Both the position numbers and the translations under genes were made by a program. The notes under the pieces are model-generated. The model was given only the letters and a program-made list of their open reading frames with translations. It was not told the origin of the DNA and searched no databases. Positions 15,578-49,684 of a stretch of 64,000 bases of DNA are shown piece by piece; the first letter of the stretch is position 1; each line of letters opens with the position of its first letter. Source of the stretch: Takakia lepidozioides (lineage: Eukaryota > Plantae > Bryophyta); contig CM060731.1 in assembly GCA_030704615.1 (NCBI GenBank), positions 67,208,001 to 67,272,000 on the forward strand, given 5' to 3'.

Positions 15578-16192
15578 TTAGAGAAACTGTAAGGCTGTGG
15601 TTGTAACAACTGAAGTAATGCCTGCAGAGCACAAAGCACAAATGTATGATTGCCACAAAATGCTATGGGTAGTGTCCTGTAAACCTGCGGGGCTTGCAAG
15701 CATTGATCAAGAGAAAAGTTACTCTCTGTTCTTCTGTTTCCTCGCCACTGCGTGAGTAGTATCGCGAGCGTATAATCTGCTAGTTCCCTCATAGCTTCAA
15801 AACTATCGCATTGATTGTCTGTCCCGTCGAGACGCCCGTTACTTGGAACGACGCCGACTCTTACGCTCAGAACTTTTTACTTTCTTGAAGTTGCTCCTGC
15901 TTCATGATTGGCTGTAACCGCTGTGACTAGATTTTAGAATTAATTTTCTTTAGTGGATTTTCCCTGCTGGCCTGTCCACTAGGATAACACACGTGACAAG
16001 AAATTCGTTTTTCTGTACTCGCCGTATGTTCCGTTACCCTTTTTCCGTATGCATTAATGGGCCCGCCATCCATCCTCTTTGACGTAGTAGGTAGGTACTT
16101 TGACGGCCACTCCTGTCCTTTTTCTTGATGACACTTGTTCTTGCAGCTCCTTCTCAGCTGTGCGTCACGGCCTGACTTCCACGCGTCCACTT

Positions 16193-19100: not shown

Positions 19101-20634
19101 TAGCTTCAGCCAACTTTTTGATCTCTTCTCCAACCTTCTCTGCATAGTTGGAATTCATCCTGTATCTCGCCTGTTTAACTGGTATTGATCCTGGTTCCAG
19201 TTCAATCTTATGTTGACAGATCTCAGGTGGTATCCCCTTCAGATCCTCATAGCTCCAAGCAAATACATCTCTGTATTTAATGAACAGACTCTTTGCTTCC
19301 TCAAAGAATTCTGGCTCTAGATCCGCCCCTACCTTCACCATCCTTGGTTCCTTCTCAGTTCCCACATTCACTTCCCTCACCTGCTCATCAGCTGTGATTG
19401 TCCAACCAGTTACTATTTCATCCTGTAGACTTATAGTGGCCGGTTCCTCTAGGATATCAATCTCTCCTTCCATTTCCTCATAAAAATGTGGTGGGTAACT
19501 ATTTATTTCCTCCTCAATTGGGGTTGTTGTCACTGCACCACAGTAGATACTTTTTAAACAACTCAGACCTTCTAATTGCATCTCTGCAACCTGTTCCCAC
19601 TCTGGGTGTGCAGCAAACAAAGTAGCTTCCTGTTCCTCATCCAGTCCTTCTTTCCAATCATACTCTCTGACCCCTCTTGGTCTTCTTGTAGCAGATAGTC
19701 TTTCAGATTTCTTAGTGGTGATTTGTATCTTGTTCAACCCATCCTGCACAGTCAGTAACTGTGAATTCCAATCATGAGACACTTTGGCCTGTTTCAGCCA
19801 TGGTCTTCCCAACAATAAGGAATAAGCTTCCAGGACTTCATTCATCTTCAACACAGTTACTGTGATCTTAAAGATCATCTCTTGAATCTGGATTTTAACT
19901 CCTCTGATCAATCCCAATGGCTGTACACTCCTTTGGTCTGCCATGGTTACTGTAAATGGGGCTGGTTTCATGTTGTTTAGACCTAGCTTTTGCCTCAATT
20001 GGTCTGTCATGATATTCACAACAGAGCCTCCATCTATCAGTACATCTGCCAGCTCTGTGCTTCCAATTCTCAACTGGATAACTGGCATAGAATCATCAAA
20101 ATCCATGATTGTTTCTTGCCCTTCTGGCCTCACATTATAACTGGTCACCTTGCTGTTCAGGTCTGTGTTCTCTGTCAAATGGGCAATCCTGTTGATTGCT
20201 TGATACAGCCTGTGTCTACAATAAGGTGCCACAGCTAATAGCTGTCCAATGGTAATTTCCACTTTGGACTGGCATATCACTTCAGCCAATGTCCCTTCCT
20301 TACCCTGCACTTCTGCGGCTTCCCTCTTTCCTTCTTCCTCACTGACTTCTTCTTCTCCTTCAGAGTCTGAGGAGTCTACCATGGGAATATCAGTACTCTT
20401 CTGCATTTCCCGTATGGTATCCGCCACTTCCTTGTGCAGTTCCTTCTCATCTCTCCAAGCCTCATCATCTTCAGGCACATCACTGTCATCTTCATTATCA
20501 TCAACTTCATCTTCCACTGGAGGTACTAATTTGGCTCTGCTTCTTGTTACTATCATTGTACTCACTTCCGGTACAATACATGGCCTAACCATGTGGGCTG
20601 CCACTACTGGCCCCTCATTCCCAGGAGCTCTCAT
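16193..20634 (-). pseudogene. Gypsy pol (protease, RT, RNase H, integrase), frameshift near 18975
   Basis: VLIDGGS; MDGFSGYNQ, FGLCNAPATFQR, FLDDF; CDAS..NYSTTEREALA; GHFG..CDECQ, WGLDFVGP, ISDQGSHF, GQAEATNK, WNGPY. Confidence 0.95.
16285..16460. repeat. 30-bp tandem repeat downstream of the integrase
   Basis: About 5-6 copies of ggctgtgtgaccctgtgttgggctgtgata; a related ctgtg-rich array lies at 24770-24920. Confidence 0.85.
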
Positions 20635-22068
20635 CTCATTCTGGTGTCTGATCCAGAATGGACAAGCCGCCTTACGATGTCCTGCCTGATTACAATAGTA
20701 ACACAGTTCTTCTCCATTGGGTCCTTGCCCTTGGTCTGTTCTGGGATTATTTCTGTAATCCTGAATCCCTGGCTGGAAATTCCCTCTTGGATTACCCTGA
20801 TAGCCACCCCTGGGATGTCCCTAGTAATCCCCTCTTGGATTACCTCTCCTTTCCATGCCATTGTTATAACCACCTGTCCTACCATAGTGGTCTTGATCAT
20901 TGTTTCTTCTTGGCTGGGGTTGCACTTGATGCACCCTTACCTGCCTAGGCTCTCTTACTGTTGTTCTTCTGTTGTAGTAACAATTCTCAGTAGAATGGTT
21001 ATCCATTTTACAGATAGTGCAGTGTTTCTCCTTCATGTGGCATTCAGTAGTGGTGTGGCCTTCATTCTGGCATTTTGCACACCAAACACCCTTCCTCCAA
21101 TGTGTTGCAGCCTCTGTGGCATACTTTTTCAAGATTTCTTCTAATCTCTTCTCATAATTTTCCCTCTTCATCTTTTCCTTCTTTTTACTCTTTTTTTTAT
21201 GCTCCATCTCCTCTTCTTCTTCTGACTCATCCTCAGAGTCCTCTTCATCTCTTTTCTCCTTCCTGAGCATTCCCAACTGCTCAATTATGTTTGCTGTTTC
21301 AAATGCCTCATCCACTGTATTGTGGGATAACATGTCTACTTTCTTTTGCAACTCTGGCCTTAGTCCATTCACAAACCAAGCCTTCTGCAATCCTGGTGCT
21401 GGTATGGCAGCCAACTTTTTCATCATCAACTCCATTTTCTCCATATACTCTTCAACAGTTTCATGCTTCTTCTGCTTCAGCTGCTGTAAACTCCCATACA
21501 CTTCATCCTCAGTTTTACTGGTCCTGAACCTATTTCAGAACGCTGTACTCAAGCCATTCCAGGTTAGGAAATGATTATCAGGGAATCTTGCATACCATTC
21601 ACTGGCTTTCTTTATAAGTGAACACGGAAACAGTCTCATCTTGGCATCATCGCCATTCTCATTGTTCACTATACACATGTGCTCAAATTGGCTAATGTGT
21701 ACATCAGGATCCCCTTTCCCTGAATATATCGGAAAAGGTGGTTTAGCCCGTGTTGGTTGTAATGCCATCTGCGACCCTACACCCTGCCCCCTGACAGTTG
21801 TTGGCCTTTTGGCTGATGCTGGTCCCTGTGGACCTGCCTCAGTTGCGCTACTTTCCACACTCCCTGTCCCCCCAGAGCCAGATCCAGGTCTTTCGCCTGA
21901 TCCCTCTGAGCCGACACCTTCGTTGGCCTGTGATCCAAGTGCTCCACTTGATCCAGGTCCAACGGGTTGGGATGTCCTGGTTGTAGTCTCAACCTCAGCT
22001 GTTGGGTCTACTTCTTCATATTCCTCATCTTCCAATTTCTTTCCTTGGTTTTCTTCTTCTTCACTCAT
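20631..22068 (-). pseudogene. Gypsy gag with zinc knuckles, one stop and one frameshift
   Basis: YSGKGDPDVHISQFE..LFPCSL..ASEWY..LTWNGL; LKQKKHETVEEY..WFVNGL; CAKCQNEGHTTTEC and CTICKMDNHSTENC. Confidence 0.9.
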
Positions 22069-22219
22069 GTAACTATTTTGTAATAATGTTGGAGAGTTTG
22101 AACTCTCCGCTGGTTCTGCATCCTCATCTTCTGCTCCCGAAACTGGAGTTCCTGCTCATGGTGTTCCATGCCAACTCTTATCAAAGATTTCTGCCAAATC
22201 TTTTATCCAGGGATGTACC

Positions 22220-23115
22220 TCAGATCTTTTCACCTCGTGGTTGATCTTCTTCCTCTGCCAAGTCCCTTAATCTTTCTTGCAAAGAAAAAGAAGGTGTGGT
22301 ATCCAACTCTAACTCCTCTGGTATAGGTGATGTACTCCCTGATCTCAATGGTGTGAGAGGTCCAGATGATTCCCCAATGTCTATTCCTCTCTCCCACAGG
22401 TATGGATAATGAGCTTTCAGATAACTTTCTCTTTTTGCTGAATATCTTTGGAGTCTAGCTTCTCTTTCATCACTCATGTCCCATATCTTTCATTTCTTTT
22501 AGTATGGCAACAACCAAAATTCTCTCCTGTAGTATCTCTCATATATGCCTGGGTTTCTTTCCAGCTTCAATGTACCTCTGGCTATACTGGAAGTCTCCGT
22601 TACCATATAACCATATGGTAAACAAGTCTGAAAAGCTGTTCTTGGTGTAAGTTTGATCCACAAGATATCCTTTGGAATCCAATTCTTTACCAATACAAGC
22701 TCCTCATGCATATGAGTGTAAACATTCACTTTCCTTTCCTCCCAGCTTTCAAACTCTACCTGCTTAATAGATAGTAAGGCTATCACATAAACCAATGTTG
22801 GTAACCACCGTGCTCTTCCTCTACAGGCTACCTGATAAATCTTTATCACTCCTTTCTCCAGACCCCATTCCGGATCAGCATCATGCACTCGCTTAAGAAT
22901 ATTTTCTTTACAACTGTCTGGCAATTCCAAGAACCTTTGAAAGAATTATTTGGACAATCTTTCTTCCTTCGTTCCACAGGGAATTTGATTCACTTCAAAT
23001 TCCTTAATCCTCCAACCACCATGATCCCACCAGATGCCTGTCACATCTGGTTGTTCATGACTCAGTTCCCCAGTATGGTCGCCAAATGTCACACGGCTTT
23101 TACTCACCCATCCCT
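22220..23115 (-). CDS. Extra ORFs upstream of gag, function unknown
   Basis: ORFs 22946-23140, 22499-22930 and 22220-22477 are co-oriented with gag and have similar composition. Confidence 0.45.
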
Positions 23116-23124
23116 TTGCTATCC

Positions 23125-24245
23125 GAGGGGGAAACTCCAAGATAGAAGAGTTGGATATCTCTAAGCATTCAGCACATGGCCAAGAAGTGCACGAAGCCCC
23201 GGCAATTGAACATGACTCGGGAGACCACAGAGCTGTCAGAAGATACCATCAGTCGCTTGGTGGAAGCGGTGGTCGCCAGGACTTGCAAGGTAGGCAAATT
23301 TTCTTGTGAGTTGTATCAGGAAACTGGCGCCTTACGTAAAGGGAGTCAGTTATTGTTCGTGGATGGGATAATATCCGGAACTAACGTGTCGTTGTTGGTG
23401 GACACAGGAGCGTCGCACTCCTTCAAGACACCGGCAATGGCACAAAAGCTGGGACTCCCGATAAGTGACGTGGGGGCCTCTATTGAGGTGCGTTCTGCCA
23501 AAGGAGAACCGCAATTGGCGAAAAGGTTGGCGTTTGATGTTCCTCTTCAACTGGGGAGTTGGGAGGGACGTGAGAACTTCACCATCTGCGAGATCGATGG
23601 AGTGGATCTCATTTTGGGGATGACCTTTTTGAGCAAATCCGGAGCGGTCATAGATGGCCACAAGAGAGTAGTCACGCTGCCATATGGGAATGGTGGCGAG
23701 GTCTTACGAGTGTCGGAAACGCCCAAACCCGTGGGAGGGCAAATAAACCTTGTGTCAGCAAGGGAGTGGGCCGTGGAGGAGGCACACGAGCCCCAGTTTT
23801 TGCTCTACATTAGAGAAGTGAAGGGAGAAGGCGATGGGGAGCCGAGCCCAGATTGGATCAAGGGGATTTGGAAATACCAGGATGTGATGCCGGAGGATTT
23901 ACCAAGCGGCTTGCCACCGCGAAGAGGAGTTGACCACAAAATTGAGGTGATACCGGGATCGGAACCGCCTGCCAAGGCACCCTACCGGTTGAGCCACAGA
24001 GAGTTGGTCGAGCTGAAGGCTCAGCTCAAAGATCTAATGTCAAAGGGGTACATCCGGCGAGTAAGTCACCTTACCTGGCCCCGGTGCTATTCGCAGACAA
24101 GAAGGATGGGACGCTGCGGATGTGTGTCGATTACAGGGCTTTGAATAAGGTGACTATAAAAAACCGGTACCCTTTGCCAAGGATCGACGATCTTTTCGAT
24201 CGGTTGGCAGGAGCGAAGAATTTCAGCCGGATCGATCTGCCGCGT
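23125..24245 (+). mobile_element. Internal fragment of a second, chromovirus-like Gypsy element (protease plus start of RT) without LTRs
   Basis: [67 protein letters not shown]. Confidence 0.9.
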
Positions 24246-25312
24246 GAAACAATCAGTCATGACCTGCAGCTAGTGAATCATTGTTGGGTTTCCTATTATA
24301 TTCCTTATCAGTTTATATTCCCTGTTTATCATGACCAGGTATCTTTTTAAGCGTCAGATTGCTTCTTGGGCCCCCCCTGATTTCATTCATACACAGCTTC
24401 ACTCAAGTCTCTCAACACAAGGTGTTTGTATCGGATGAGAATCAGATTAATCATAATCCGATACATGCTGATGTCCTAACTTCTCTAATCTATCCCTCTA
24501 AGTAATCCTACATCTCGTACTAACTCTGTCCTATAGTATCTCCTTCCTCCTCGCCAGCTTCCCTTCCTTCGATCTTAGTCCTTCCCCAGGAGTGATCTCT
24601 GTGGCTAAAGTCCCCCAGCAGTGATCTCCATCCCCAAAAAGTGATCCCCTCCCATCTCCGCTGCCTCTTTTTTCTCCTTCCCCCCTGTTCTAACCGTTTT
24701 CCTTCACTAACCGTCCTCCGTGAATTACATGTTCCCCACAGTCGTTCCCTGTCATGATAACCGTTCCCTACGACTGTGACAGACTGTGCGACTGTGTCAG
24801 ACTGTGACGATTGTTTCGAGTTGTGTCGGGCTGTGACTGGCTGTGTATGGCTGTGACGGGCTGTGACTGTGTCGGACTGTGTATGGCTTTGACGGGCTGT
24901 GACTGGCTTTGACGGGCTATCTCAAAAAATTAAGGGTACCCCTCAGAACCCATAGAAGTGTCTAAGTCCCAGACTCCACAGAACCCATAAAAAAATGCCT
25001 AAGTCTCAGACTGCCTCCTAACACAATGCAGCGAATCAAAATTTTTAAATACAATATCCACTAATTCACATACGTACAGATATAAACTAAAAGTAAATGG
25101 GAAAAACGAAATAACAGTAATAAACAAAGAAACCAAATATTAAATAAAAAGCCTCCCAATTCATATATATATATATATATGTATGTATGTTTGTGTATGT
25201 ATGTATGTATAGTGTATATATATGTATGTATTTTTATATTTATATGTATATATGTATATACACCTCCAGAGTGAAACATATTTACTAAAATGTGTCCTCT
25301 TTTACTGCTTCA

Positions 25313-25752
25313 CAGTAGAATATTACAATATACAAAGTCAAGCAAATTCACTATCACTGATTTACAGTCAAACCGTATACTAAACATCATGGAACATAGT
25401 CAATATGTTCCACTTCAGTTAAACCACTTTACTACACGTCATGCATCCACGTCACTCTGCCCTTAAGCCACTCACTACACGTCATGCATCCATCTTATAA
25501 TTCAGTTAAACCACTTTACTACACGTCATAGCCACGTCGCATCCACGTCATACTGTGCTGCCTACACGTCACCCCCTAGGTTTTACTGTCACATTTCACT
25601 ATCAGAACCTGGCATCTGGATTCGACTGCTTGACTGAAACGACTTGACCTTTGTCACGCATGTTCGACTATGGAGGCTGGGAGTAAAAATGTCGCAAATG
25701 ACTAAAAAATGAGTCAAATACAGAGTCGAAAAGCCCAGCTTGTATTGTAGTG
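25313..25752 (+). mobile_element. CACTA-like right terminus
   Basis: Ends TATTGTAGTG (reverse complement CACTACAATA); subterminal CTACACGTCA and GACT repeats; second copy at 42226-42677. Confidence 0.7.
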
Positions 25753-27760
25753 CAACAACAACACCATTGATACCCAAATGATTAGATGACACATATGAGG
25801 ATATGTCTAAGTGCATACTCAAAACTGTAAAAGTGGTTCGGAAGACATTAGTTCACATTATACAATGTCAACTAAAATCTCCCGTCGCACTTTATGTGTC
25901 TTGCCATGCACATAGAGTATGATAATTCCTATATGTGGTGGCATGGTCACTCTTATGTATGATGGGCGGAGGTGTTCAGTGTGGACACAATAGTATACAA
26001 TAGTATCCAAATATCAATCCAAAAGTCCAGGGCAGTTTGAAATATTACTTGTCGTCAACATCACTTAAGTTGTTCATCGACTATGTCGACCACTGTTTCA
26101 GATTAGACAGTGAAAATGTGATGTCCAAGAATGGTTTAAAAGAGCGCGCGCGATCGCGCATGCTTCATTCAGTGCAAGTCGTCACCTACAGAAGCACTAT
26201 CGAGCAGTAGCTAATACCAAACTGTACGGGGTCGAAGAAATCATTCATTAGTAGGACAATAAACTCAGAGTTTTCAATTAAAAGGATTATGCAATTATTG
26301 AACCTTGCGCAATCGAACGAATTTGACTCCGTAGTTTACTGCATTGGATGAGAAATTGAAGATGTGATGCGAAAGAATGCCCTGATGAAGCAACGCGCGA
26401 TCGTGCGTGCTTCATTTGGTTGGTACTTGTATTCTAGCGACCAACAACAACACCATTGATACCCAGATGATTAGATGACACGTATGAGGATATGTCTGAG
26501 TGCATACAAAACTGTAAAGTGTTTCGGAAGACATTAGTTCACATTACACAATGTCAACTAAAATCTTCCGTCGCACTTTATGTGTCTTGCCATGCACACA
26601 GAGTATGATAATTCCTATATGTGGTGGCATGGTCACTCTTATGTATGATGGGCGGAGGTGTTCAGTGTGGACACAATAGTATCCAAATATCAATCCAAAA
26701 GTCTAGGGCAGTTTGAAATATTACTTGTCGTCAACATCGCTTAGGTTGTTCATCGACTATGTCGACCACTGTTTTAGATTAGATAGTGAAGATGTGATGT
26801 CCAAGAATGGTTTAAAGAAGCGCGCGCGATCGCGCGTGCTTCATTCAGTGCAAGTCGTCACCTATAGAAACACTATCGAACAGTAGCTAATACCAAACTG
26901 TACGGGGTCGAAGAAATCATTCATTAGTAGGACAATAAACTCAGTGTTTTCAATTAAAATGATTATGCAATTATTGAACCTTGCGCAATCGAACGAATTT
27001 GACTCTGTAGTTTACTGCATTGGATGAGAAATTGAAGATGTGATGCGAAAGAATGCCCTGAAGAAGCACGCGCGATCGCGCGTGCTTCATTTGGTTGGTA
27101 CTTGTATTCTAGCGACCAACAACAACACCATTGATACCCAGATGATTAGATGACACGTATGAGGATATGTCTGAGTGCATACTCAAAACAGTAAAGTGTT
27201 TCGGAAGACATTAGTTCACATTATACAATATCAACTAAAATCTTCCGTCGCACTTTATCTGCCTTGTCATGCACACAAAGTATGATAATTCCTATATGTG
27301 GTGGCATGGTCACTCTTATGTATGATGGGCAGAGGTGTTCAGTGTGGACACAATAGTATCTAAATATCAATCCAAAAGTCCAGGGCAGTTTGAAATATTA
27401 CTTGTCGTCAACATCACTTAGGTTGTTCATCGACTATGTCGACCACTGTTTCAGAATAGATAATGAAGATATGATGTCCAAGAATGGTTTAAAGAAGCGC
27501 GCGCGATCGCGCGTGCTTCATTCAGTGCAAGTCGTCACCTACAGAAGCACTATCGAACAGTAGCTAATACCAAACTGTACGGGGTCGAAGAAATCATTCA
27601 TTAGTAGGACAATAAACTCAGTGTTTTCAATTAAAATGATTATGCAATTATTGAACCTTACGCAATCGAACGAATTTGATTCCGTAGTTTACTGCATTGG
27701 ATGAGGAATTGAAGATGTGATGCGAAAGAATGCCCTGAAGAAGCACGCGCAATAGCGCGA
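25753..27760. repeat. Tandem repeat, ~3 units of ~675-690 bp
   Basis: Units start caacaacaacaccattgataccc at 25753, 26442 and 27117; each unit has two gaagatgtgatg..aagaatg + palindrome sub-repeats. Confidence 0.95.
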
Positions 27761-28134
27761 ATTTGACTTCTTCGTTTTAGTCTTATTCTAAATATAAATA
27801 AAAACGACTCCCAACTAGATAACCCTCAATGTTCTCAATGTACTTTAATAGTCCTTCCGGTTGACTTCTCGGAAATTAGTTCTTCTGTGCCTCAACTCAA
27901 TAACGCGCGATCGCACGTGGTTCTGATGTTCCTATAGCTCAGAAGAATTTTCTTGGGATAATATATGTCAGGATACTCTTATATGACTGAAAAAACAAAG
28001 TCATGTATATGGATTCTGTTCGCCATGCTTAGCAACCTCGTTGTTGCTTACAATCGGATTTTACGTTATTGGAGGGAAAATTGTGGACCAAATACACACG
28101 ATCGCGCGTTCTTTGCGTGTCTCTTTCTGTATAG

Positions 28135-28764
28135 TCTGTAACTGAGCACGAGTTCTTGATGATTCTTCCAGTGTGGTGGATTCGTGTTCGATGAAGGAGG
28201 AGAAGGAGATGGAACATACCGGACACAAGGCAACGCTTTCACCCTCCTCACAAGGTGAATGCAGAGTTGCGGTTATTATGACGGGACCTTCCGAAGGAGT
28301 TCGTGTTATATCATCTCCAGTTTCTACAATTCCATCCACAGAGGAGCCTGACACCTAATCCCCTGAATCAGACGATCAAGACTTATTCACCAATAGGATA
28401 TTTTTGCGACGTTCCTCCCAGGTCAGCAGCTTTAAGTTCTTTTCTAGAACAATATTGTGGAGGGTCTTCCGGAGATCCTGTAGCTGAAGTATCGACGGAA
28501 TCAAATGATTTCTGCGCTATGTACCCTGCGTATACGCCAGATACCCAAGATTATATACCCGGATCCCCGGAGTATACTCCCATATCACCAGAATACACTC
28601 CCTCAACCCCAGAGTACACTCTGACATCCCCAAAGTATACACCCTCATCGCTAGGGTATACTCCGGGATCCCCAAAATACTCACCAATATGATACTTTAG
28701 CCACCTCAGACCCGGGTCGGCTGCATTGGCCTCATTTTTGGCACAATACACACATACGTCAACT
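28135..28764 (+). pseudogene. Exon encoding RNA Pol II CTD-like heptad repeats
   Basis: 28531-28689 reads YTPDTQD YIPGSPE YTPISPE YTPSTPE YTLTSPK YTPSSLG YTPGSPK YSPI, flanked by a duplicated YSPIGYF...SAAL.SFL.QY block; TGA at 28690 replaces GGA; donor GTAAGT at 28765. Confidence 0.75.
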
Positions 28765-29355
28765 GTAAGTTTCGACCTTTCGAAATCATCAGAAATGGAA
28801 AGATTATTCACCGGCACACCGGAGTGTATTTGAACCAGTTCAGAATCTCCATGTGGTTCCACCGAATACCCACAATAATCAGTAGGATCAGTTTCTGGGT
28901 ACCCGAGAAGTTTTCAAGAGATTCACTGGGGGTGTCCTGAATCACCATGATATAGTCCTTCATCTCAGTTTTAGGCAGACCTATATGACAGTACATTTAA
29001 ACACCAACGATGTCTCCGTTTTCGTTCTTCACTGTTGAATAATAAAGTATTCTTCATGATTTTTGAAACCAATTAAATGATCTGCACCTTTTGAGATTTC
29101 CAGTTTAATTGTGACTTTGATTTATTCCATTCCATTTATTCCATATTGCAGTCACAATTGAATGTTCCCTATTCCAGCTTAATTGTAAGTTAGTTTCTTT
29201 CAATTCCATTTCTTCCAAGTGGGATTCCCATTTGTATATTGGCCTGATATCCGTAACATTATGATTTGTTTCAAACTTCGGCCTTTCCTCTCAATCCTGA
29301 AATAATGCCATGAGATATCTAATCCAGATAACATAATGTTGTGTTTCATGTTCAG

Positions 29356-32330
29356 TGGTCAATCAAACATATCGGCGGATTGCCTGGTTGGCGTATACAA
29401 GGAGGATGTACCTCCTGATGTACCTCCTGACCACCAACTGAAGTTTTCCTTCAAGATTTGGAGTGGAGGTGAAGGAGCTTAATTATGGCTACGTTAAAGA
29501 TGTTGAGATGGAGTCGGACGTGGAGAGTCCAATGATGGTGGTTTTCATCTTGGAGGATGGTAGAGCGAAAAAGACGTTTGACTTTTCTCTGGAATCTCGT
29601 CGCGTTCGCAAGGCAATGATGAAACCGGTTGTAAAGATGGGATTCACTTTCCCTGAAGGTGGTGCAGCCTTGACTGCTCAGGGATTCGTACGAGCTTGGA
29701 GCATTTTCCAAGATGTACTCCATGCGCAGGGAAACATCAACAGAAAACAACGAGACGATGCGACAGCGAAGGGGGCAAAGGGTAAAGGTAAACGGAAGTC
29801 AACGGCGAGATCCTCTCAAACTGAGAATGAGGAGGAGCAGCCGATGCATTGACGACTTGTTTCTAAGAGATGCATAGCATGATAAGCAAGCACGCACGAT
29901 CGCGCGTGCTCCTTTCTAGTTCAATTCCATGCCGATGTAACATTTTCCAAATCAGGAACTCGTGGAGGAGATTACTGACCGGGAGCAGAGGGACTACTAC
30001 ACCGAATGGCCATCAATTATCCTCTGGTCAGATAGTAATATTCGATTGCTGAAGATTTCTAAGCTCCTGAACGACCCAAATAAAGCCCAAAAATTCGACA
30101 CAACCTTCCCGGAGAAAGTTGCTCACGCCATGATGTACTATGAGTTGAGGGGGAAGCCCAAGAAATTCAACGATAATGTTTCCAAATCTGAAACCGTTCA
30201 GTGGAAGGTAATTATTCAGACTTCTTTTATTGTTTAATGTTTTGTTGTACATTCACTAGAACTGTGTGTCCCTGTTGTGTGTTGGCCTGACATGCTGTTC
30301 CTGTTGACCAGGAATTTCTACAAGCCTCACAACTTATATTGGAGATGCTTTGCGTTAAGGAGGCCATGACCTTGGTCCTTTGCGATGACGATGTTTGGGA
30401 GAAGTGGCAGGAGGTTTTCAAAGAGTGGGAGAAGGGAAACCTCCTGGACATTAACGAAAAGAAGCAGAAGGGTGTACAATCGCAGCTCACAAAATCTACA
30501 GTCTGCAAACTCCAAGGATTGAACCCCCTTCAAATGAAAAAGGTTGAGCAAAAGATTTTGGACTTGAAGATCTGTGTTCGTGGTCCTTACAAAGGAAAAG
30601 ACCCTAAGATTCTTTGCCTGTCCAATTACATCGATCGAATAAAGGACTGGCGGTTTATAATCGATGATGTCATGGAGGTATTGGGATTTGATGCTAGGAG
30701 CAAGCAACATCCAGAGCCGTATACAAAAGCACAATAGCTCGAAGTGAAGAAAATGTACAAGTTCAACAAGTCGGAGTTCGAGACATTCCGATCGAAACTG
30801 GGGGCCAAATACATTAAAAGCAAAGGGCCGCGACATTAAACTTTGCCTTAGTGGAAGTGACATTAGCCGCCTTCAACACGTCTTTCAACGTGCTTTCATC
30901 AAATACATGCTTTCATGTAAGAAAAGGGTTGAAGACATGGAGACGGAAATGGGCAACCTCAAGGATACCTTACCAGTGCATAGGAGGGAAGCGGAGGTTC
31001 ACGGATGCCAAAACACAGTTGAAAATTGTGAGAAAGAGAGATTTTGATAACATCGCAATGGTGTTCGTCAACACAGTCTGTGACGATGACTCAACTGTTT
31101 TTATGCAATGAAATTACAACAATATTTTCGATGCGTTCTTCGAACAACAGCTGAGCCCTAATGCATTTGCCTTCTTCTCGACACAGATGTCTTCTTCCAA
31201 TCTGGTTTCGTACATAAGGTTTGGCGAGGGGCGGGACAAGTATATTATGCTTCAGGGGTTGTATCTTCCTGGAGAGTTCGACAATCCTTACATGAGCTGG
31301 GCAAAGTCATTTTCAAGGCCACTCATGTGCCTTGATTACGTATTTCCTGCTACAGCTGCCCAGATTGAGAACCACGAGGAGCACTTGCAGGGAGTGCTGA
31401 TGTTCAGCCCCATTAAACGAGTGATTAAGGCTCTGGACACTGAGCTCATGGAACACGAGAAAGATTGTGCCGCTTATGAACACGAATTGTGGGCAGAGTC
31501 GAGCGACTACATTGCGTCCTTGTTCTGTGGCGAAGGGATGGCGGCTGTCAATGTTTTTGGAGGCGTAATGTTAACATCGGCTCTCCACGTAAGCAATTCC
31601 ATTTCCATATCCAATTCGATTTCCTTTTCCATTTCCATTTCCGAAACACATCTTTGGAACCTCGCGCGATCACGCGTTCATTCTATTTACTCAATGGTTG
31701 GCATTTTTTGTAGGCTAGGAACGTCCGAGTCCTTGATATAAACCACAACCTGAAAAAGAAATTATGCGCGAATAAGGTTGCCGCTAACTACACACTCCTC
31801 CACACGGAGAATGAGGACGGAACCGAGGTTGGTGATGACACATTGGGAGGGCAGGAGACCCACATGCACAATGGCGAAGGAAATGACGACGACGACGACG
31901 ATGACGGACAAAGAGATCTAAAGACAGAGCAAAACCAGGAAGAAGGTGACGGAAACGAAACGTTGGACAAAAAAAAGAACTTGAGGGAGGTGAGGAAGAC
32001 AAGGGCAACTACCAAACACGATGATGTCGTCAACAATTTATTGCAAGATGAGACAAAACAAATTGAGCAAGGCAGAAATCCACCAGCTGAACAAGTAGGG
32101 AGGGTAGTACCAGAAGAAAGCCACCATCCACAGGCCCTGACAAATACTGGTGAATGAGACAATCCCGAGACAATTGTGCTGTCTTCCTCCATTGAAGAAG
32201 TGGGGGGAGACAATGTAAAGGATAACGCTGATTCTAGAGACGTCTTCGATAAGGAGATTTCAGAAATAGACTCAGGGGTAGGATTCAGTCCTGTGGAGGG
32301 GGATATGCCATTACGGATGTCACCATATCA
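29356..32330 (+). pseudogene. Multi-exon decayed gene, tentatively ParB-like plus degenerate beta-class N6/N4 DNA methyltransferase fold plus acidic tail
   Basis: Co-linear ORFs linked by GT-AG introns (e.g. 30208-30311, 31589-31713) and in-frame stops; motifs WPSIILWSDSNIRLLKISKLLN..TTFPEKV, DNIAMVFVNT, FFEQQLSPNAFAFF, YIASLFCGEGMAAVNVFGG. Confidence 0.45.
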
Positions 32331-32916
32331 AGGTTTAAGCCAACGAGTTAGAGACATCGTTGATGGTCAGACATGTAGGGCATTGGTCGGCGATCAAAAC
32401 TTTGTTGATGTGAGTATTGCAGATTATGAGCTGTCCTGACACTTGTAAAACCCAATTTACAAACTTGATATAATATCAGAATCTTTTACCAATGGAACTA
32501 ATAACCTATTGCTCTGTGATAGTCTCATAAATCAATCGAAATTTATACGGAAGTCTAATCACCCGCATTTTCTGTAGATCCATGAGTCCAATACGGAGGA
32601 AGTGACACATATCAGAACAAACGACACACAACAGCGTACAATGAAGAAACAATACGACTTGAGAGTGAGGATATCGTCGCCCAAGGTGACAGCTTCAAAA
32701 ACCGCGGGCGATCGCGTGAGGTTACTTATGGGAGGGGTCGACAAAAACATACCAGATGGCGAAAGACCCATCGCCGGGGGAATTGGCGGCGAAACCTCAT
32801 CCGGCTTGGAGCAAGTGCCGCCAAAGCTGATAGTTCATTCTCCGCCTTCTGCTTTCCTTTCTGTATTCCATTGCGAAAAACTTCCAATGAATTAATAATT
32901 ATTTCCTAATGGGCAG

Positions 32917-33744
32917 GATGATATGATCTATCCACCATACGACTATTCCCAAGCTGTCAATTCCGTGGATTTCTTTGCTCTTCCAATGGGTCCAAATGGA
33001 TGTCAGCCCGGATATTATGTCCTGGTTCTGGATGTCGGGTTCATATGTGAGGTATACCTCCAGAATGGGCCAAAAACCCCTCCCGCAATGCAGCCTTGTG
33101 TCTCCGCTGGAAGATTTAAGTTAGCAATGCGACATGAGGTGGGAGACTTCCTCAAATGGGTCATCAAGAAGTTTTGGGTCATCTTATGGAACACTGGCAA
33201 AGAAGAGATTGTCGTGGATTTCAAATCACTCTTGTTCGGGAGGAACGCCCACAAGGTGATGCATTACAGTTCCGACCAATGTGTGGAACATAGACTTACT
33301 TTCAACACATATTGGCATACGCTACCTAAGGCCCCAATCTACTTCAAACAACTTTACGACTTGTTCGTAGACCCCGACTGTAAAGCCTATAGGTCTAACA
33401 CCCTGCTTATCGACGTCGTTGGGAACATGTACAAGTCTTTCCTCAATCCTCTGAGCTTGGTCATCTTCCTACCTAAATACGAAGCACTTGTAGATCCATA
33501 CAAGGATGATTTTTTGATGGGTCATCTGAAGCCCCACCTGGAGAAGTTGAGGCATTAAAAAATGGACACTTGGGCCTTCAATGAGCAGAACCCTTTTGGA
33601 ATACCTAAGGATATCTACTTTCAGGATGCTAGAGTGAAATTCATTAATTGCTGGGACTTTCCATGGCCTAAGAACAAAGAGGAATGGGATGCACATCTAA
33701 AGTACCTAGAGGCCCTGGAAATGGAACATGGGATATTAAAGTGA
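32917..33744 (+). pseudogene. Divergent NIF/FCP1-like phosphatase domain
   Basis: VLVLDVG, MRHEVGDFLKWVIKKFWVILWNT, SDQC, YFKQL, NTLLID, YKSFLNP; in-frame stop at 33556. Confidence 0.7.
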
Positions 33745-35236
33745 CTAGTTTTGAGAATGAATTGGGATTCTGAGGTCATTGAGTTCCTTATCTGTTCATA
33801 TGATTCTTCTTTTATTGATTTACTTAAGTGTCTTTATCACTCCTTCACAGATCCAACAGCCTAGATCTCCACCTGTGAGGGGACCCCGCTTGATAATTTT
33901 GACGTTAATGGAGTGCTATGCAAAATACGAAGCGCCAAAGCCCAGGACCTGCTCCACGTTTTTCGGAATCTGATTACATCATTCCTGCTATTGTTGGGTA
34001 TCGGCAAATCTTTAGACGGAAGATGTATCAGGAATCGTCTGATATTGTTGACGATGTAGAAATGATCAAGCCAGAAGCTTTCCAAGGACCTGACAACTTG
34101 TTGTCTACTCAGGCATCTATTGCTGTTATGGAGAGTGATCCCATCAGTGTTTCAGATGTTGTTTCGAGGCTCAAAATATCAAAAGGTGAATCCACCGTTA
34201 GCAGGGTCGATGATTTAACTGGGGTTGGCTACATAGTGGAAAGCGACTCTCAATATCTTGGGGAATTATCTTTGGAGCCGTCCTTATCCCAACACTTTCC
34301 ACCAGACGCCGTCACGGGGCATCTACAAGAGTCTACCGAACAATTGGTTGCAACTATCGCTGAACTGCCTCCTCATTATGTCGTAATTCCAAGTGGGTCA
34401 CCGGATCACAAGGGCTGGACACCTCAGCTGCTGAGAAGTCAGGTGATTTAATTCCATTTCATCCATGCGTTTTATTGTTACCGTGTTTCTGTTTATCCTC
34501 TAATTTTCTCTCTTTACTCCAGGCCAGAAAATCTGCAACGTATGACCTTCCTGTGAAGCAACAACTTATGTGGGGTTGTATTCCAAGGTAATATATATAT
34601 TTTTTCCGTTTGAATTCGGTTCAGGATGTGCAGAAAGAAAGAAACCGAATTCCATTGCCAACCGTCAGCGATAAGGTTATTGAACTCACTCATTCGCCGA
34701 CTGAGGTCAGCACACCGACAAGACCGGCATATATTTCTGCATATCCCCAACCCCCTAGAATTCCAGATGGTCCTGTGTCAAGGAAACGTTACAAATCACA
34801 GCAGTCAGCGGCGGTCGTGTCCGATGATGAAAAAACAACATCTGGCGTTCTGTTATTCCTTCAACATTCACCTGCCTCCAGTGGTAACCCGTCTCAGAAT
34901 CGAAGGATAAATCTAGCAAAGGTAATAAGTATCTCCTTCACTTGGTCCTCTGTCTTATTGGTTCTGGCTTCCTAGTAATCATTACATATATCATTTACAT
35001 TGTCGACACAACTTTACACAAAATAACCTCGCGCGATTGCACGTGGTTGCAGGAAACTCAGAGATTCCCGATTGTGATTTTTTGTCTCAAGTCTCAATTG
35101 GGTGTCGTAATGCTGAAAATATTACCTTCGCAAAATATTCCATTTGAAAATCAGGGTATAGAAACTAGGTAAACCACAAAACGCAAGTATGTCGTGGCAT
35201 TTTTTGAGTTGCAAAATGTATTGAAATACCTAATTT

Positions 35237-36395
35237 TTGGGTCAGATAACAGAAACTAATGGGCTCTTTTGGATGGTTCAGAACGTTGTTACTCAAGAAA
35301 TGTGTGGTGTCCGGAAACACAAACGCATGTTGCTGGTATTGAGTGTCAATGGACTTCTTTGCTACAGGCCACCTCCTACCGGAAGTGAGTTGTTTAAACA
35401 GAGGTTCCACTTGAGGAAAGTAACAATTCGGGTGCCCGCAAGATCATTTGTGGTTCCAAGACATGGAGTGCTGGAGTTTCTTCGACTTGCATTGACTCAT
35501 TTTCATGTAGCGATTTGGTCTTGCTCTGAGAGGGATAATGTATTCAAGATGTTGGAGTGTTTCGTTCCTCCGGAAATTATGAAACAATTTTGTTTCATAT
35601 GGTCTGCCAAGCATTGCACAGATACAGCTGGACATATTAAGCCTGGAATGAAATATCTTATTAAAGATATTAAGAGTATTCTCGTAATATTAAGTGAGAA
35701 AGAATTTGCTAGGCAGGGGCAAATTCTACTGGTTGACGATGACCCATCCAAGGCACTCCGAAACCCAGTGAATACTGGAGTCTTCCCCATCACATTCAAG
35801 GAATCAAGCAATTTGGAGGATTTGGTTGACCTCACCAAAGCTTTGTGGCCTTTTCTCTCTGGTTTGATTGGAGCCCAGTCCGTTGTTGATTACGTCGGCA
35901 AGAACTCCTGCAAATCTTTCGGCCCTCCGATAGATCGAAATCACGTCTACTGGTCCTGGTTTGGAAGATTTATTGATGCTTCTGTTTGACACCCTCCTCA
36001 AAAAGATCCCGATTATCTGGGTACGTAGTTTAACATTGCCCTATTTTGTGTGTAGTCCATCAGCTTTACTTCAACCTCCATTTGTACTTATACGTATGTT
36101 GACTTCACATGACTTTTGTGAGATCAATGATATTTCAATGATCTTTGTATTTTCTTTAACAATTCCTTTCTGTGCTGCCTCCACACAGTTATATTTCAGT
36201 GTCAAGTTCAGAATCAAATTCGACAGGAGAAGAAAGAGGAACGACAACGTAAGGCTGAGCGGAGGGACCGTGAGGCTTTACGTTTGTCAAGGTCATCAAG
36301 TACAACTACCAGTGCGGTGTCTGGTCATATCTTACATCAATCTCCCACTGTATCCATGTCTCCTTAGGTGCACAGAATTCCGCCATCAGTGGTAA
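35237..36395 (+). CDS. FCP1/SCP/NIF-family phosphatase-like protein, paralogue of 5566-6689
   Basis: LLVLSVNG..PRHGVLEFL..IWSC..ILLVDDDPSKALRNP; about two-thirds identical to the 5.8-6.7 kb copy over the first 119 aa (counted by eye); same intron position after PDYLG. Confidence 0.8.
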
Positions 36396-36609
36396 CCGAC
36401 GGCGATCTCGAACATATACGTTGAGTGTGAGCCGTTTGGGAAGCAACTCTGTGTTATTGATGAATTAAACTATGGCCGACCTATTCATTACACACATACG
36501 TTATTTAACTCTGTCAATGTTATGCCAGATCATTTCGGCTGTAATGTCAGTGATCGAAGTTTGAGAGAAATCACGCGCGATCGCGCGTGGTTCCTTCATA
36601 TATCCTCTT

Positions 36610-38748
36610 GTGGAGCTAGCATGGATCAGCAGTGCCATCAGATGTTATCAAAATAAGTTGACTTCATTGTTAGTTTAAGCAATAACAGATCAGGCTGGAG
36701 GCTGGAGGAGGCTGGAGGAGAAGAAATTTTCCAATGTTTTCATATTACGATGGGGAACAACACGATCATCGTCTATGACTGAATTCGGGTTCCTAACTCG
36801 TAATTCAAGCTCCCACGATGGTCGTCTCATTTGTTCCTGAGCGGATTGCGAAGCTCTGTTAAAATCTCTCTGAAGTAATTTTGGTGGCTTCGAAATTCTT
36901 TTCCTGACGAACTGATGGCACCACTGTGGTTGATTGAAATCTGGATGCACTCGGCTCGTTGGGGTTCTCAATGGTGGTAGAGGCAGAGATCTGTCGGGCG
37001 ATCACTCGTGGTTCGAAAAGCGGAATTCAGCATCGTCCTGGTTCTCCAGCCGATTGCCAAATGGTTATATTACCTCAGCAGTGCCACATGTGATTGGTCG
37101 GAGTGATGTTTTTTCTATGCTCACGCAATCAACAATGAAAATGCTGTCATTTGAAGATATGATGATTCTGCAGGCTTAGTCAGTTACAGCGAGGGAACTC
37201 AACGTATTCGGATAATCCGTCCCGGAATATTTCACACCATCATCCTGGATGATTCATTGATGTGTTTCAGAACATGCACTGAAATCATCCAGGCTGATGG
37301 TGTCACTTGTTCCTTGGCGGATTGTTCAAGTATCTTATAATCTTAGTCTTTAAGTTGTTTGAAATCATTCTCCCTGCTTGCATAATCCGATCTCCAACAA
37401 TTGACAACATCCTCGTGGTGTTTTTTTTGGTTCATATATCCTTCATTTGGAGATCCATTATTCTTTTGAGGAACACTAGCGATTAACATCGCGCGATCAC
37501 GCGTGCCTTTCTAAGAACTGACCTGTTATGATGTCCATCATTGCACACCAAAATGGTGTTACGAGGAGGCAAAATGTTAGCAATTGAACGTCGATCTCCA
37601 GCGACATTCTCGTCGTTTTCATGTGGACTGGACGCCAAAGGAGGAACACTGTCGCTAACAATCTCAACAATCATATGTACTTCAAGGTGCTTGATACTGC
37701 GTATGTTCATGTAGCTGATTTCTATAGGAGTCTTTTTGTTATTCCCATTCCAACAACATCAGGTCCACTGAGACTGCCATATTCCGAAATCGGAATCAGG
37801 CACCACCTACATGAAACCATCAGCTAAGAATGAAATCTCCAGTTCATTCAATCACAGCCCGGAGAAATATCTCAAGCTGCTGGCCAACTACTTATGGGCT
37901 AGGGTGTTTATCTGGAGTCGCATACAATGAATCGAAGATCTAGTTCTCAGCTGACATGCAGCAGATGGTTTTATATTGGTCAATGATGGTGGGCCGTGGC
38001 TGATACGGGAGTCTGAATATGACAGTCTTTGGGGATCTGATACTGTTCGCATGGGAATAGCAAAACAACTACTATACAATTCAGCTACAGGAACAACAAT
38101 AACATCAAACACCTAGCAGTAAATAGGATTTTTGACATTGCTTGTGATAGCTCCAATCAGTTAGTTGGTGGTTAGTCAGTAGGAGATTATTTAGTTGGTG
38201 ATCAGTTTACGAGTGCTTTACAGTAAATCGTCAGAAGTACCACAGTCCGTCACAGATGAACCTCGACTGGTCACCCGACACTATTTCCTTGAAGATTTCA
38301 TAGAAAACGTCACTCTCTCCATCAACGTACTCGCCACCTTCCCAATTGGATACTTTCAGCATCTTACTCCAGGGTCAGTTACTTGGACATTATGTTTTGA
38401 AGAGCATACGAGTAATTCATCATCTTCGCGATTCACTGAAAGTCTGCAAGACCACCAATTCTTCGAGAAGTACAGCTGAACTTCGGTCGCACAAGACATT
38501 GTTGGTTGGCGTAATATTGAAGGATATTTTTTGTGAGGTCATCACCATATCAACGATTCTCGAGACAACATTTCAGGGACTTCTTCCATCTTCTGCTAAC
38601 AAAACCTTCGGAACAACGGAAGAATACAGATTTGAAAATGGTCCCTCCAACCTTGTCAAAATATCGTGATTTTGGGAAATGATTTTCCTCAAAATATTTT
38701 CATCATAAGTACGTCGGCTGACATCGTCTTGTGTTAACGGAGTTCAGT
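36610..38748 (+). ncRNA. Cluster of long imperfect RNA hairpins (putative pre-miRNA/hpRNA array)
   Basis: Hand-folded stems at 36754-36837, 37029-37110, 37210-37327, 37382-37461, 37532-37634, 37684-38115, 38192-38461 and 38475-38748; several show G-U pairing on the plus strand. Confidence 0.6.
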
Positions 38749-39049
38749 CCTCATTCTAGAAGTTGATACTCTCATTGACATGGTTTACGTTACTTGTATT
38801 GGTCCATGCCGCATGGGACGAGACTTACTCAAATTGACGTGGTTCTGAAATAAAACCTGGTTGTTTATCATCAATGTCTCCCTATTGTCTTTCATTTCAT
38901 TTCATGGTATTGTGTCATTGTGCCATGTTTTGCTTACATATTTGATTGATTTGTCTTGTACATCACATAGTATCAGCCTTCACAAGCTCAGTCGCGGTCC
39001 AATCATCCATCAAGCCGCGGATCATGAAGTGAGTTATCACCCGACACCC

Positions 39050-39270
39050 GTTTTTTTAATTTATTTTTTAATGTAATGGAAACACCTGGGAGCGACAGCT
39101 CACAAATCAGGCCCCCTTAATAGTATAACCTCTTTCACAGTAACCCCGCCATGTGACGTTGGAATGGGACACCACCCATGAACATACCACACTCGTCGGT
39201 AACAAGATTTGACCCCATAATCATCTGGGTGGCACTCAGTGCACTTCACCAACTGAGCTACTGACTGTTG
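39050..39270 (-). mobile_element. tRNA-derived SINE
   Basis: Minus-strand A-box TAGCTCAGTTGG, B-box-like GGGTCAAATC, A-rich tail at 39050-39070. Confidence 0.7.
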
Positions 39271-39587
39271 GTATCTCATTCAACTCTTATCAAACGTCGA
39301 GTGAAACAGTGGAACTTGCTTTATGAGCCAAATAGAAACTGTTTTTTCTCCTAAAGTTTATACATAATGTTTCTTTATTGCTCATATTATATGTTAATAG
39401 ACAAATAATTATTTATATATTTATATTTATATTTAAAATGATCCATTTAAATTCATTTAAATGATTTAAAAATACATATTCAGATATTTCTCCTTATTTC
39501 TGGACCAAACTTTAGTCCAGATTTACTTAAAATTGTGTTCTTAGTAGGATTTGGCGTTTGTTGTGATTTGTTGCTGGGGCCTGTTTG

Positions 39588-42225: not shown

Positions 42226-42677
42226 CAGTAGAATACTACACTATACAAAGTCAAGCAAACTCACTATAATTGATTCACAGTCAAACCATGTACTAAATAT
42301 CATGGAACATAGTCAATATGTTCCACTTCAGTTAAACCACTTTACTACACATCATGCATCCATGTTAATGCCCTTAAGCCACTCACTACACGTCATGCAT
42401 CCACGTCATAATGCAGTTAAACCACTTTATTATACTTCATAGCCACGTCATACTCTAGTTAAATCACTTTACTACATGTCATCCCTTATGTTTTACTGTC
42501 GTATTTCACTGTCAGAACCTGGCACCTAGATTCGACTGAAACGACTCGACCGCTTGACTGAAATGACTCGACCTTTGTCACTCAAGATTGACTCTGAAGG
42601 GTGAGGAGTAAAAATGTCAGAAACGACTAAAAAATGAGTCAAATACGGAGTAAAAAAACACACTTTCTATTGTAGTA
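42226..42677 (+). mobile_element. Second copy of the CACTA-like right terminus
   Basis: Direct repeat of 25313-25752, ending TATTGTAGTA. Confidence 0.75.
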
Positions 42678-49300: not shown

Positions 49301-49684
49301 CCCCATGGGATGAACTGGAACCAGACCACAAGAGTTTCAACTCACTACAGGTGTAATGCAGATCTTAAATGCTACTACATCACCCTTCTAATTAGCTTTG
49401 TCCATGCTCAAGTGAAAAAGAAGTGTTCTAACTTCTAGCGTGCACCACTGGCTTGATGTCCATATATTCTAGACATGTAATGAGCAAGGAGAGGTCACAG
49501 AAAAATAGAAAGAGCAAAAGAACGATTCACAGTACGAAGATACACCCACCAGCGGACTATCAGTCGAGACTTTCCGAAAATCTTCCACCACTATCTTGTA
49601 GAAGCTTTTTGGATACCTCTGCGCTTCGCCACAGTCTTGTCTCTGGCAATGGCGAGTGCACAACGTGCATACGCCCCCAGTCAT
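46353..49684 (-). CDS. B3/REM-like transcription factor with two B3 domains and a C-terminal chromodomain-like module, multi-exon
   Basis: Exon 1 MTGGVCTLCTRHC..PKSFYKIV; B3-1 FIPWGFV..VTLQDSSGRAWQV..GGWRQFAVDHSLEAGG; B3-2 VVLMKPSHVYRGFWL|intron|..LSGGWRDYALDHCLEEGDVCVFEL; tail FYFVDRLIGRR..EFHV..WWVP. Confidence 0.9.

Follow-up and report, generated by a model that had tools for sequence, protein, structure and literature searches.

What kind of genetic unit is the block of about 14 kb that occupies positions 25753-39545 of a 64,000-nt stretch of Takakia lepidozioides DNA (CM060731.1), referred to here as the window? The sequence-only reading saw in it a transposon-like element combining iterated palindromes, a mimic of the Pol II CTD, CTD pseudophosphatases, a ParB/MTase-like protein and a hairpin-RNA array. 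Our own answer, to which we assign a probability of roughly 0.55, is that the block belongs to a family of plant mobile elements, as a decayed copy with a truncated left end, and carries a putative self-recognition cassette. That its structure joins a multi-exon gene to a family-specific iterated palindrome can be said with considerable confidence; that the two serve recognition and protection of the element is, judging from sequence patterns, slightly the better bet. The mobile-element nature of the block is supported, as is its decay, with stops and frameshifts all along it. A search of the literature found no description of such an element or system.

The gene itself runs in the order ParB-like, MTase-like, acidic linker, NIF1, NIF2. 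All sequence comparisons were made exon by exon, and L026 in the following lines is the relative discussed below:

29941..30207, plus strand: C-terminal half of a ParB-like domain (z=10 to L026 6225-6395)
30208..30311, plus strand: phase-0 intron; the L026 intron at the matching place carries a palindrome
30312..30850, plus strand: helical linker exon, WQEV...G.L.D (z=3.9 to L026 6783-7184), interrupted by stops near 30735 and 30838
31031..31588, plus strand: region resembling beta-class amino-methyltransferases, with degenerate motifs and a stop at 31109; motif-I exon z=6 to L026
31589..31713, plus strand: intron with a palindrome; the L026 intron at the matching place carries six
31714..32436, plus strand: end of the MTase-like domain, then an acidic low-complexity linker; stop at 32155
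32899..33741, plus strand: NIF1, a plant DxNG-type HAD domain; stop at 33556
35234..35986, plus strand: NIF2, a pseudophosphatase with Ser in place of the nucleophile Asp
36402..36465, plus strand: small Cys-containing coding stretch, common to the sister copy (5564-5638)
39477..39544, plus strand: right terminus common to the sister copy, 7-bp stem with 9-nt loop
5053..6749, minus strand: sister copy of the 3' end, comprising NIF2, the small Cys exon and the terminus, by sequence homology to the block

The diverged sister copy announced earlier is thus confirmed; what remains of it has no palindrome and no hairpin cluster. Among the GT-AG introns proposed to link the open reading frames, 30208-30311 and 31589-31713 hold, the donor put at 34444 lies at 34443, and 34588-34624, being 37 nt long, is doubtful. 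From 29.9 kb onward, the single spliced gene suggested for 27.9-36.4 kb is plausible.

Dispersed over the block is a 14-bp CG-rich palindrome with the core CGCGCGATCGCGCG, present in 14 copies with at most two mismatches between 26147 and 37503 (0 expected from 100 shuffles) and in a 15th, at 36995, with three; the longest perfect form measures 26 bp, at 27063. The palindrome is rightly called private, with 14-15 copies in the block and none elsewhere in the 64-kb window; a metagenome scan with it found nothing. Its copies sit in introns and non-coding DNA, both of the plus-strand gene and of a divergent minus-strand gene, and their number has been raised further by tandem triplication of a 675-bp unit:

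26147, 26394, 26823, 27069, 27500, 27746, 27904, 28095, no strand: palindrome copies, by motif scan
29893, 31663, 32705, 35030, 36574, 36995, 37490, no strand: further palindrome copies, by motif scan
25752..27759, minus strand: three tandem 675-bp units, 92-95% identical to one another
26769-26861 and 27015-27101, minus strand: predicted GT..AG introns of unit 2

Because every 675-bp unit has two predicted minus-strand GT..AG introns, of 93 and 87 nt and with one palindrome in each, the block cannot be described as co-oriented. The units look like a triplicated piece of a decayed divergent gene, and a Pfam search with their exons gave no match. The left end of the block is cut off at an adjoining MITE-like repeat; the flanking repeat 25313-25751 was considered as the left end of the element and rejected, since it has a second copy and inverted ends of its own. 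Substitutions among the palindrome copies are mostly (13 of 17) C>T or G>A, so the palindromes were methylated at some stage.

What gives this arrangement a meaning is a relative. One co-linear relative of the gene was found, on a contig of another sample (L026/L027): it encodes ParB-like, MTase-like, acidic and NIF parts in an order kept at 25-35% protein identity, and has two introns at places matching introns of the block, which supports the suggested co-travel of the modules. It has one NIF domain, no heptads and no hairpin cluster. Its palindrome differs from that of the block, with about 27 copies in introns and upstream DNA – 23 copies, against 0 in shuffles, and 4 more past a Copia element inserted into one copy. 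A third palindrome, TCGG-NN-CCGA, belongs to a second ParB/MTase-like family, which is paired with transposases of the GCM-domain MULE type; arrays of this palindrome lie upstream of the gene at four loci. Relatives, as these loci show, keep the gene and change the palindrome. The VANC-like logic proposed for the block gains support, because so distant a relative retains the layout, gene and intron positions yet bears a different iterated palindrome, and this suggests an undescribed form of transposon self-recognition.

How far, then, can the two leading domains be named? Searches of Pfam, PHROGs, NCBIfam and PDB sequences detected neither ParB nor MTase in the window's own exons; NIF gave the only Pfam match of any exon, PHROGs and NCBIfam gave none, and PDB matches to ribosomal eL24 and adaptin were dismissed as chance. 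What stands of the ParB/MTase-like protein is a gene conserved with its relatives, and through those relatives both putative folds are only moderately supported. A DG(N/Q)HR-type motif reads DGNHR in the second family and GQH in L026, and is not recognisable in the block copy; the low-confidence predicted model of the ParB-like domain (pLDDT 47) brings up sulfiredoxin at rank 4 (E 1.9), ParB/Srx profile searches gave no match, and viral sequence scans with both ParB types found nothing. For the MTase-like part, there is support in the second family for a beta-class motif order, IV ... X-I-II, in which the SAM loop lies towards the C-terminus; against a phage MTase profile, the motif-I exon of that family comes 1st-2nd among 6812 peptides (z=9). 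From there a chain of matches leads through L026 (z 2.8) to the block (z 6 to L026); the block exons have no direct match to phage MTases and none, by hhalign, to the second-family MTase pieces, and a word-based homologue search with the MTase-like exon found nothing.

The two NIF domains are recognised by Pfam (E 3.6e-10 and 0.007). As for their being CTD pseudophosphatases, two NIF/HAD domains are indeed present, but the first Asp is missing from NIF2 alone; NIF1 retains it, with its remaining motifs eroded. The link to CTD phosphatases is not supported, since both belong to the plant DxNG family – the type of 113 of 154 NIF domains among relatives – and the nearest solved structure is UBLCP1, with no FCP1/SCP chain among the matches listed. 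They share Pfam PF03031 and the NIF/HAD fold with the FCP1/SCP Pol II CTD phosphatases but have no DLDET/DxDxT motif I. Tandem domains occur in host proteins of the plant DxNG family too, whereas those of the block are element-borne and long-branched, NIF2 being without its nucleophile. The best match is a Sphagnum protein, KAH8970694.1, at about 30% identity over the domain. NIF2 groups in a clade with copies in L009, L010 and L011 (99/98) and, measured against the sister copy (dN 0.27, dS 1.38, dN/dS about 0.2), shows purifying selection. Decayed copies of the NIF1+NIF2 pair lie dispersed over other loci, and one pair has a Helitron-type end. A word-based homologue search with NIF2 found nothing; marine-algal NIF loci (L017-L020) were rejected as element copies, their gene surroundings being host-like.

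Two further components complete the inventory:

28531..28689, plus strand: seven to eight heptads resembling the CTD, Y-T-P-x-S-P-E/K, in a stop-interrupted exon rich in Ser and Pro
37193..37345, plus strand: hairpin 1, pre-miRNA-like, z -8.4; plus strand more stable
37640..38150, no strand: hairpin 2, a 510-nt foldback, z -11.9; arms 73% complementary, no strand bias
38466..38758, plus strand: hairpin 3, z -6.8; plus strand only

The heptads put forward as a Pol II CTD mimic are real and, with pairwise differences of 36/46/77 by codon position, constrained as protein, but the CTD story is weak: they are absent from every other locus scanned, with none visible in L026. Similarly, the hairpin-RNA array comprises three real hairpins – control stretches of the window have almost none of similar quality – but they are essentially unrelated stem-loops and form no array. 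They are absent from the sister copy, unmatched in L026 and without any other match. Heptads and hairpins are thus lineage-specific, private additions. An Rfam search gave chance palindrome matches only, and a fourth candidate hairpin at 36770-37030 was discarded (z -1.1).

The best reading of the block is a family-specific self-recognition cassette that would follow VANC-like logic with unrelated domains, binding and anti-silencing being what we infer. The element would make the ParB-like/MTase-like/NIF protein, a dimer of which would bind the two-fold symmetric palindrome, as ParB does on parS; the bound protein would coat the element, and the MTase-like domain, its catalytic motifs degenerate here, might shield or alter the CG-rich sites. 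The outcome would be an element that stays expressed or mobile, as VANDAL does through VANC. The NIF domains may be captured plant HAD domains, one an enzyme and the other a phospho-ligand-binding pseudoenzyme. Several points weigh against this reading: the single co-linear relative, with its one NIF and neither heptads nor hairpin cluster; the poor ParB-like model; the failure of the block's MTase-like exons to match phage MTases directly; the C>T/G>A decay of the palindromes; and their absence from the remainder of the sister copy. To our knowledge, a transposon accessory protein with sequence-specific anti-silencing is established essentially for VANDAL/VANC; if the reading is true, the same logic would operate with unrelated, apparently prokaryote-derived domains, self-recognition would have arisen more than once, and chromatin effectors of a new, targetable class might follow. 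As three or more different cognate palindromes are available, specificity lends itself to swap tests (protein A, motif B). A wider version is more tentative, and we would sooner bet against it than for it: in early-diverging land plants, transposons from more than one superfamily may have taken up a clamp of the bacterial ParB/parS kind, joined to an amino-methyltransferase-like domain. Each family would have co-evolved its own palindromic 'parS' and would coat and epigenetically protect or mark its own copies alone, which would make this a second programmable anti-silencing system, put together independently.

Known systems resemble the block in part. VANC motifs lie in introns and non-coding DNA, are amplified by tandem repeats and depend on the family (PMC5735166). 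Like VANDAL/VANC (PMC5735166, PMC10398659), the block has, beside an accessory gene, a motif peculiar to its family that is repeated through introns and non-coding DNA, amplified by tandem repeats and different between families. However, VANC motifs are of 8-9 nt and in a single orientation, whereas those of the block and its relatives are 10-26-bp CG-rich palindromes, and Pfam finds no VANC or MuDR-type domain in the block exons. Bacterial ParB/parS and phage ParB-methyltransferase loci resemble the block gene and its relatives in having iterated palindromes next to the gene and an MTase-like partner domain; relatives of the block gene add a candidate ParB-like motif, DGNH in the second family and GQH in L026. 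Unlike them, the block gene contains introns and lies in a plant mobile element, with degenerate MTase motifs, a putative ParB-like fold and neither ParA nor terminase in the block. Prokaryote-derived amino-MTase domains have eukaryotic precedents in a chlorophyte-type Dam fused to ParB-HTH and an inactive MTase passenger in DIRS1 (PMC4738411); these are group-2 enzymes of chlorophytes, chytrids and DIRS retroelements, whereas the order in the block is beta-class-like and a NIF fusion and palindromes are added.

Could the block instead have been pieced together from captured fragments of host genes and from nested repeats, in Pack-MULE/Helitron style and with no joint function? Its heavy decay, the nested insertions present in relatives and the Helitron-type end in related NIF modules would fit, but the co-linear L026 gene, with order, intron positions and palindrome habit retained at such low identity, largely refutes this, and together with the dN/dS of NIF2 leaves it scarcely probable. 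A single anti-silencing unit in which a Pol II CTD decoy works together with CTD pseudophosphatases and a small-RNA array is also very unlikely: the codon-level constraint on the heptads, the membership of CTD phosphatases in the NIF family and the strand bias of two hairpins agree with it, but the NIFs are of DxNG type and nearest UBLCP1, the heptads, with Thr2 but without Ser7, are missing from relatives, and the hairpins recur neither in the sister copy nor elsewhere.

Two other alternatives assign the palindromes a different task. In young copies the MTase-like domain could be an active N4-cytosine/N6-adenine methyltransferase whose targets are the palindromes of its own element, which it would mark like a restriction-modification methylase. 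CG is present in every core and GATC/TCGA often, the second-family motif-I exon matches phage MTases only, and 4mC MTases of bacterial origin function in Marchantia (10.1101/2021.02.12.428880). Yet the catalytic D/S-P-P-Y motif is replaced in every copy seen, the glycine loop is degenerate, the E-values of the phage matches (4-8; 0.35) are not significant on their own, and we consider this distinctly unlikely. In CACTA elements, TnpA binding of iterated motifs is established, and the palindromes might likewise be sites for mobilisation machinery (TnpA-like or Rep-type, perhaps the divergent minus-strand gene), with the ParB/MTase/NIF gene as helper or passenger. The divergent gene's introns carry palindromes too, and minus-strand pieces upstream in L027 and L011 bear what we take to be a resemblance to TNP1/CACTA accessory domains, albeit not a significant one. 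Transposase sites, however, normally lie near the ends, whereas the palindromes are spread over introns and missing from the last 2 kb of the block, and the pairing of ParB/MTase with palindromes is common to two different element types; this possibility is rather unlikely.

For the self-recognising element that we prefer, the lead with the most support as to its mobilisation is a Helitron-type end, with CACTA and a neighbouring GCM-MULE transposase as alternatives. The Helitron 3' end (hairpin, CTRR, T) stands out clearly in L016, at the point at which its homology with L010 stops, and a hairpin plus CTAG-T end occurs in NIF modules related to the block; the block and its sister have, by comparison, a weak stem – about 18 nt before homology ends and not significant by itself (z -1.2) – and a non-canonical end. 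CACTA pentamers lie close to three right ends, in one-mismatch forms and, in L026, exactly, with the partner end absent. Pfam gave no match for TnpD/TnpA genes. In contrast to all three element types, the block has no RepHel, TnpD or linked transposase, no left end and no target-site duplication; L026/L027 likewise yielded no transposase, and as the block is truncated this absence is not final. The third lead, a GCM-domain MULE-type transposase at 9527-12606 with D-D-CxxH-E motifs and a WRKY-GCM1-fold domain, adjoins the sister copy; a viral sequence scan with it found nothing, and its relatives are those paired with the second ParB/MTase-like family. This transposase family is abundant and unannotated in plants, and bears on the origin of GCM transcription factors.

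Fourteen copies of the CGCGCGATCGCGCG core, at ≤2 mismatches, mark the block, a decayed mobile element at 25753-39545 of the window; all lie within 26147-37503, and none arose in 100 shuffles. A triplicated 675-bp unit holds six of them, the motif having been amplified by tandem repeat. Each unit, read on the minus strand, has two predicted GT..AG introns (93 and 87 nt) with a palindrome at the centre of each; the array thus probably arose by triplication of part of a divergent gene, and, contrary to the sequence-only reading, the block is not co-oriented. In this dead copy, palindromes have decayed mainly through C>T and G>A changes; the window beyond the block is CpG-poor.

Palindromes of the block by position
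29893, 31663, 35030: in or beside plus-strand introns
27904, 28095: upstream
36574, 36995, 37490: downstream

A co-linear relative (L026/L027) was reached by walking along the contig of one transposase relative, and the block gene was compared exon by exon, with single exons as queries. In L026, the ParB-like to NIF exons all lie on one strand: a GQH-motif exon, aligning with window 29986-30159 (z=10); a WQEV exon, with a weaker match (z=3.9); an MTase motif-I-like exon, aligning with 31484-31588 (z=6); a linker that is acidic and coiled; and a NIF with DLNG. Introns come after the GQH and motif-I-like exons in both. The L026 palindrome differs from that of the block – TTTAGCTCGA-N-TCGAGCTAAA, 23 copies, 0 in shuffles – and sits in these two introns and upstream, with four more copies past a Copia element inserted into one copy (L027 5469-11014; 5-bp target duplication, LTRs 99% identical). 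Heptads, a recognisable NIF2 and the hairpin cluster are all absent from L026, and its span holds no transposase. Two stretches upstream of NIF modules, L027 4772-5038 (-) and L011 2440-2730 (-), are reminiscent of TNP1/CACTA accessory domains, a resemblance that was not significant in tests.

A second, multi-copy family is oriented divergently from a GCM-type transposase: at three loci (L001, L003 and L004), such transposases stand head to head with another gene, one with MTase-like exons and a DGNHR motif. Upstream of this second-family gene, a third palindrome (core TCGG-NN-CCGA) forms tandem arrays, so two protein families, with at least three motifs between them, show a ParB/MTase-like gene paired with a palindrome of its own.

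Second-family genes, ParB(DGNHR)/MTase-like
L001 38-3798 (-)
L004 231-5369 (-)
L003 59-796 (-)
L027 1-3127 (+)
L002 16312-20850 (-)

TCGG-NN-CCGA copies
L001: 6
L003: 7
L004: 6
L022: 4

Just downstream of a second-family MTase-like gene, L021 has a long AT-rich foldback (11421-12035) and a short hairpin (12035-12099). A further iterated palindrome of TCGGCT-N3 type (12 copies, L004 14215-20817, downstream of the transposase) probably belongs to another element.

'ParB' and 'MTase' are working labels: the former reflects the motif; the model was poor and the fold search gave no clear match. The second-family motif-I exon matches phage methyltransferases only (E 4-8), and takes the top two places among 6812 peptides compared with a local phage-MTase profile (E 0.35); its pairwise z=9 is inflated, since the phage protein was chosen as best match. 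The L026 exon reaches z=2.8; for the window exon, no direct match to the phage MTase was obtained.

The two NIF domains of the block had been read as CTD pseudophosphatases, with FCP1/SCP phosphatases as the known parallel, a link that is not supported: motif I is DxN in nearly all of about 800 relatives (about 30% identity, full profile search), UBLCP1 is the closest structure solved, and the structure matches include no chain of FCP1 or SCP. These relatives make up a plant family whose members are annotated as FCP1-domain or TIM50-like proteins; the top named relative for a protein of the block comes from Sphagnum, and the host is probably a non-seed land plant. NIF1 retains the first Asp. 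In NIF2, and in that of the sister – a diverged copy of the block's 3' end at 5053-6749 – it is replaced by Ser; because dN is nonetheless 0.27 vs dS 1.38 between the two, this dead domain was preserved by selection. The closest NIF2 relatives lie within decayed, dispersed NIF1+NIF2 pairs and cluster with the window's NIF2 (support 99/98, with a long-branch caveat). Two such loci, L010 and L016, are 85% identical with differing flanks; the pairs of L009 and L011 show about 70% identity. The L010/L016 homology ends just past a strong hairpin, after which L016 continues with CTAG and then T, giving a Helitron-type 3' end. Between NIF1 and NIF2, a third NIF-like motif I (D-V-N-G) begins at 33890-33970 (+), apparently as a fragment.

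Besides NIF2, block and sister have in common the terminus and a short stretch with Cys. Three hairpins of the proposed hairpin-RNA array are significant in the block, but the sister does not share them; a fourth candidate was not significant. Four of the five introns named earlier are plausible (one with its donor at 34443), whereas that of 37 nt is doubtful. The differences among the heptads (28531-28689) fall chiefly on the third position of the codon (36/46/77 by position).

ParB binds parS as a dimer, and we propose that the element's own protein would bind its palindrome likewise, and that, once bound, it would keep motif-bearing copies active in the manner of VANC, the anti-silencing protein of Arabidopsis VANDAL. 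VANC motifs lie in introns and non-coding DNA, have grown by tandem repeats and differ from family to family (PMC5735166), and the present elements resemble them in all these respects. The block element is not a VANDAL member, nor an FCP1/SCP system, and its MTase-like domain falls in none of the eukaryotic MTase groups of PMC4738411.

The palindromes might instead be transposase-binding sites. Were the element actively methylating itself, the MTase-like domain would be the candidate, and its catalytic motif is replaced in the window, L026 and second-family copies. A CTD-decoy model can point to the CTD and small-RNA elements of the sequence-only reading, which exist as sequences without forming the core of the system. 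A patchwork without function is the last rival. What is observed is the order of the genes, introns in common, iterated palindromes specific to each family, dispersal, and selection on NIF2. Anti-silencing cargo is our preferred reading: a real type of transposon cargo, probably undescribed, which would work like a known kind. Searches of the open literature, which does not take in subscription papers or Repbase, turned up no description of such elements, so these families may already be catalogued without this interpretation.

The block's left end adjoins the first copy of a complete-looking 430-bp MITE-like repeat, which has imperfect inverted ends close to CACTACA and, internally, a 10-mer that is repeated. 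What should precede the first 675-bp unit on its left is missing, so the element is truncated there.

MITE-like repeat, copies 82% identical
25313-25751
42226-42676

The right end, a short stem-loop and AT-rich tail common to block and sister, fits either of two readings, a weak Helitron end or a CACTA pentamer with one mismatch. A Helitron-like mobiliser is tentatively favoured, at somewhat under even odds; CACTA seems unlikely, a GCM-MULE less likely again, and another kind least likely. Adjoining the sister, a broken transposase (9527-12606 (+)) combines MULE-type D, D, CxxH and E motifs with a GCM-fold N-terminus; it has no Pfam match and 132 relatives, all unnamed, one of which, when modelled, best matches the GCM domain (1odh, probability 1.0, E 0.002). 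GCM domains have been described as animal-only (PMC1702500). Short tandem repeats with a CACGTG palindrome (7339-7635), between this transposase and the sister's NIF2, may represent a motif private to the sister lineage.

The window's content is eukaryotic and plant-like; a look-up of ten of its ORFs in the protein collection gave no match for any of them.

Gypsy pieces: 15-25 kb
B3-domain genes: 46-48 and 59-64 kb

To the right of the GCM transposase, the sequence is interrupted by nested Gypsy-type retroelement pieces that have TGTGAC-type repeats (12514-25012). Related B3-domain genes number at least three (1035-1751, 46353-49329 and 59400-63766 (-)), one with a 231-bp triplication at 61949-62632. 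Outside the block, foldback or inverted-repeat structures occur at 3945-4212, 14663-14736 and 57087-57498.
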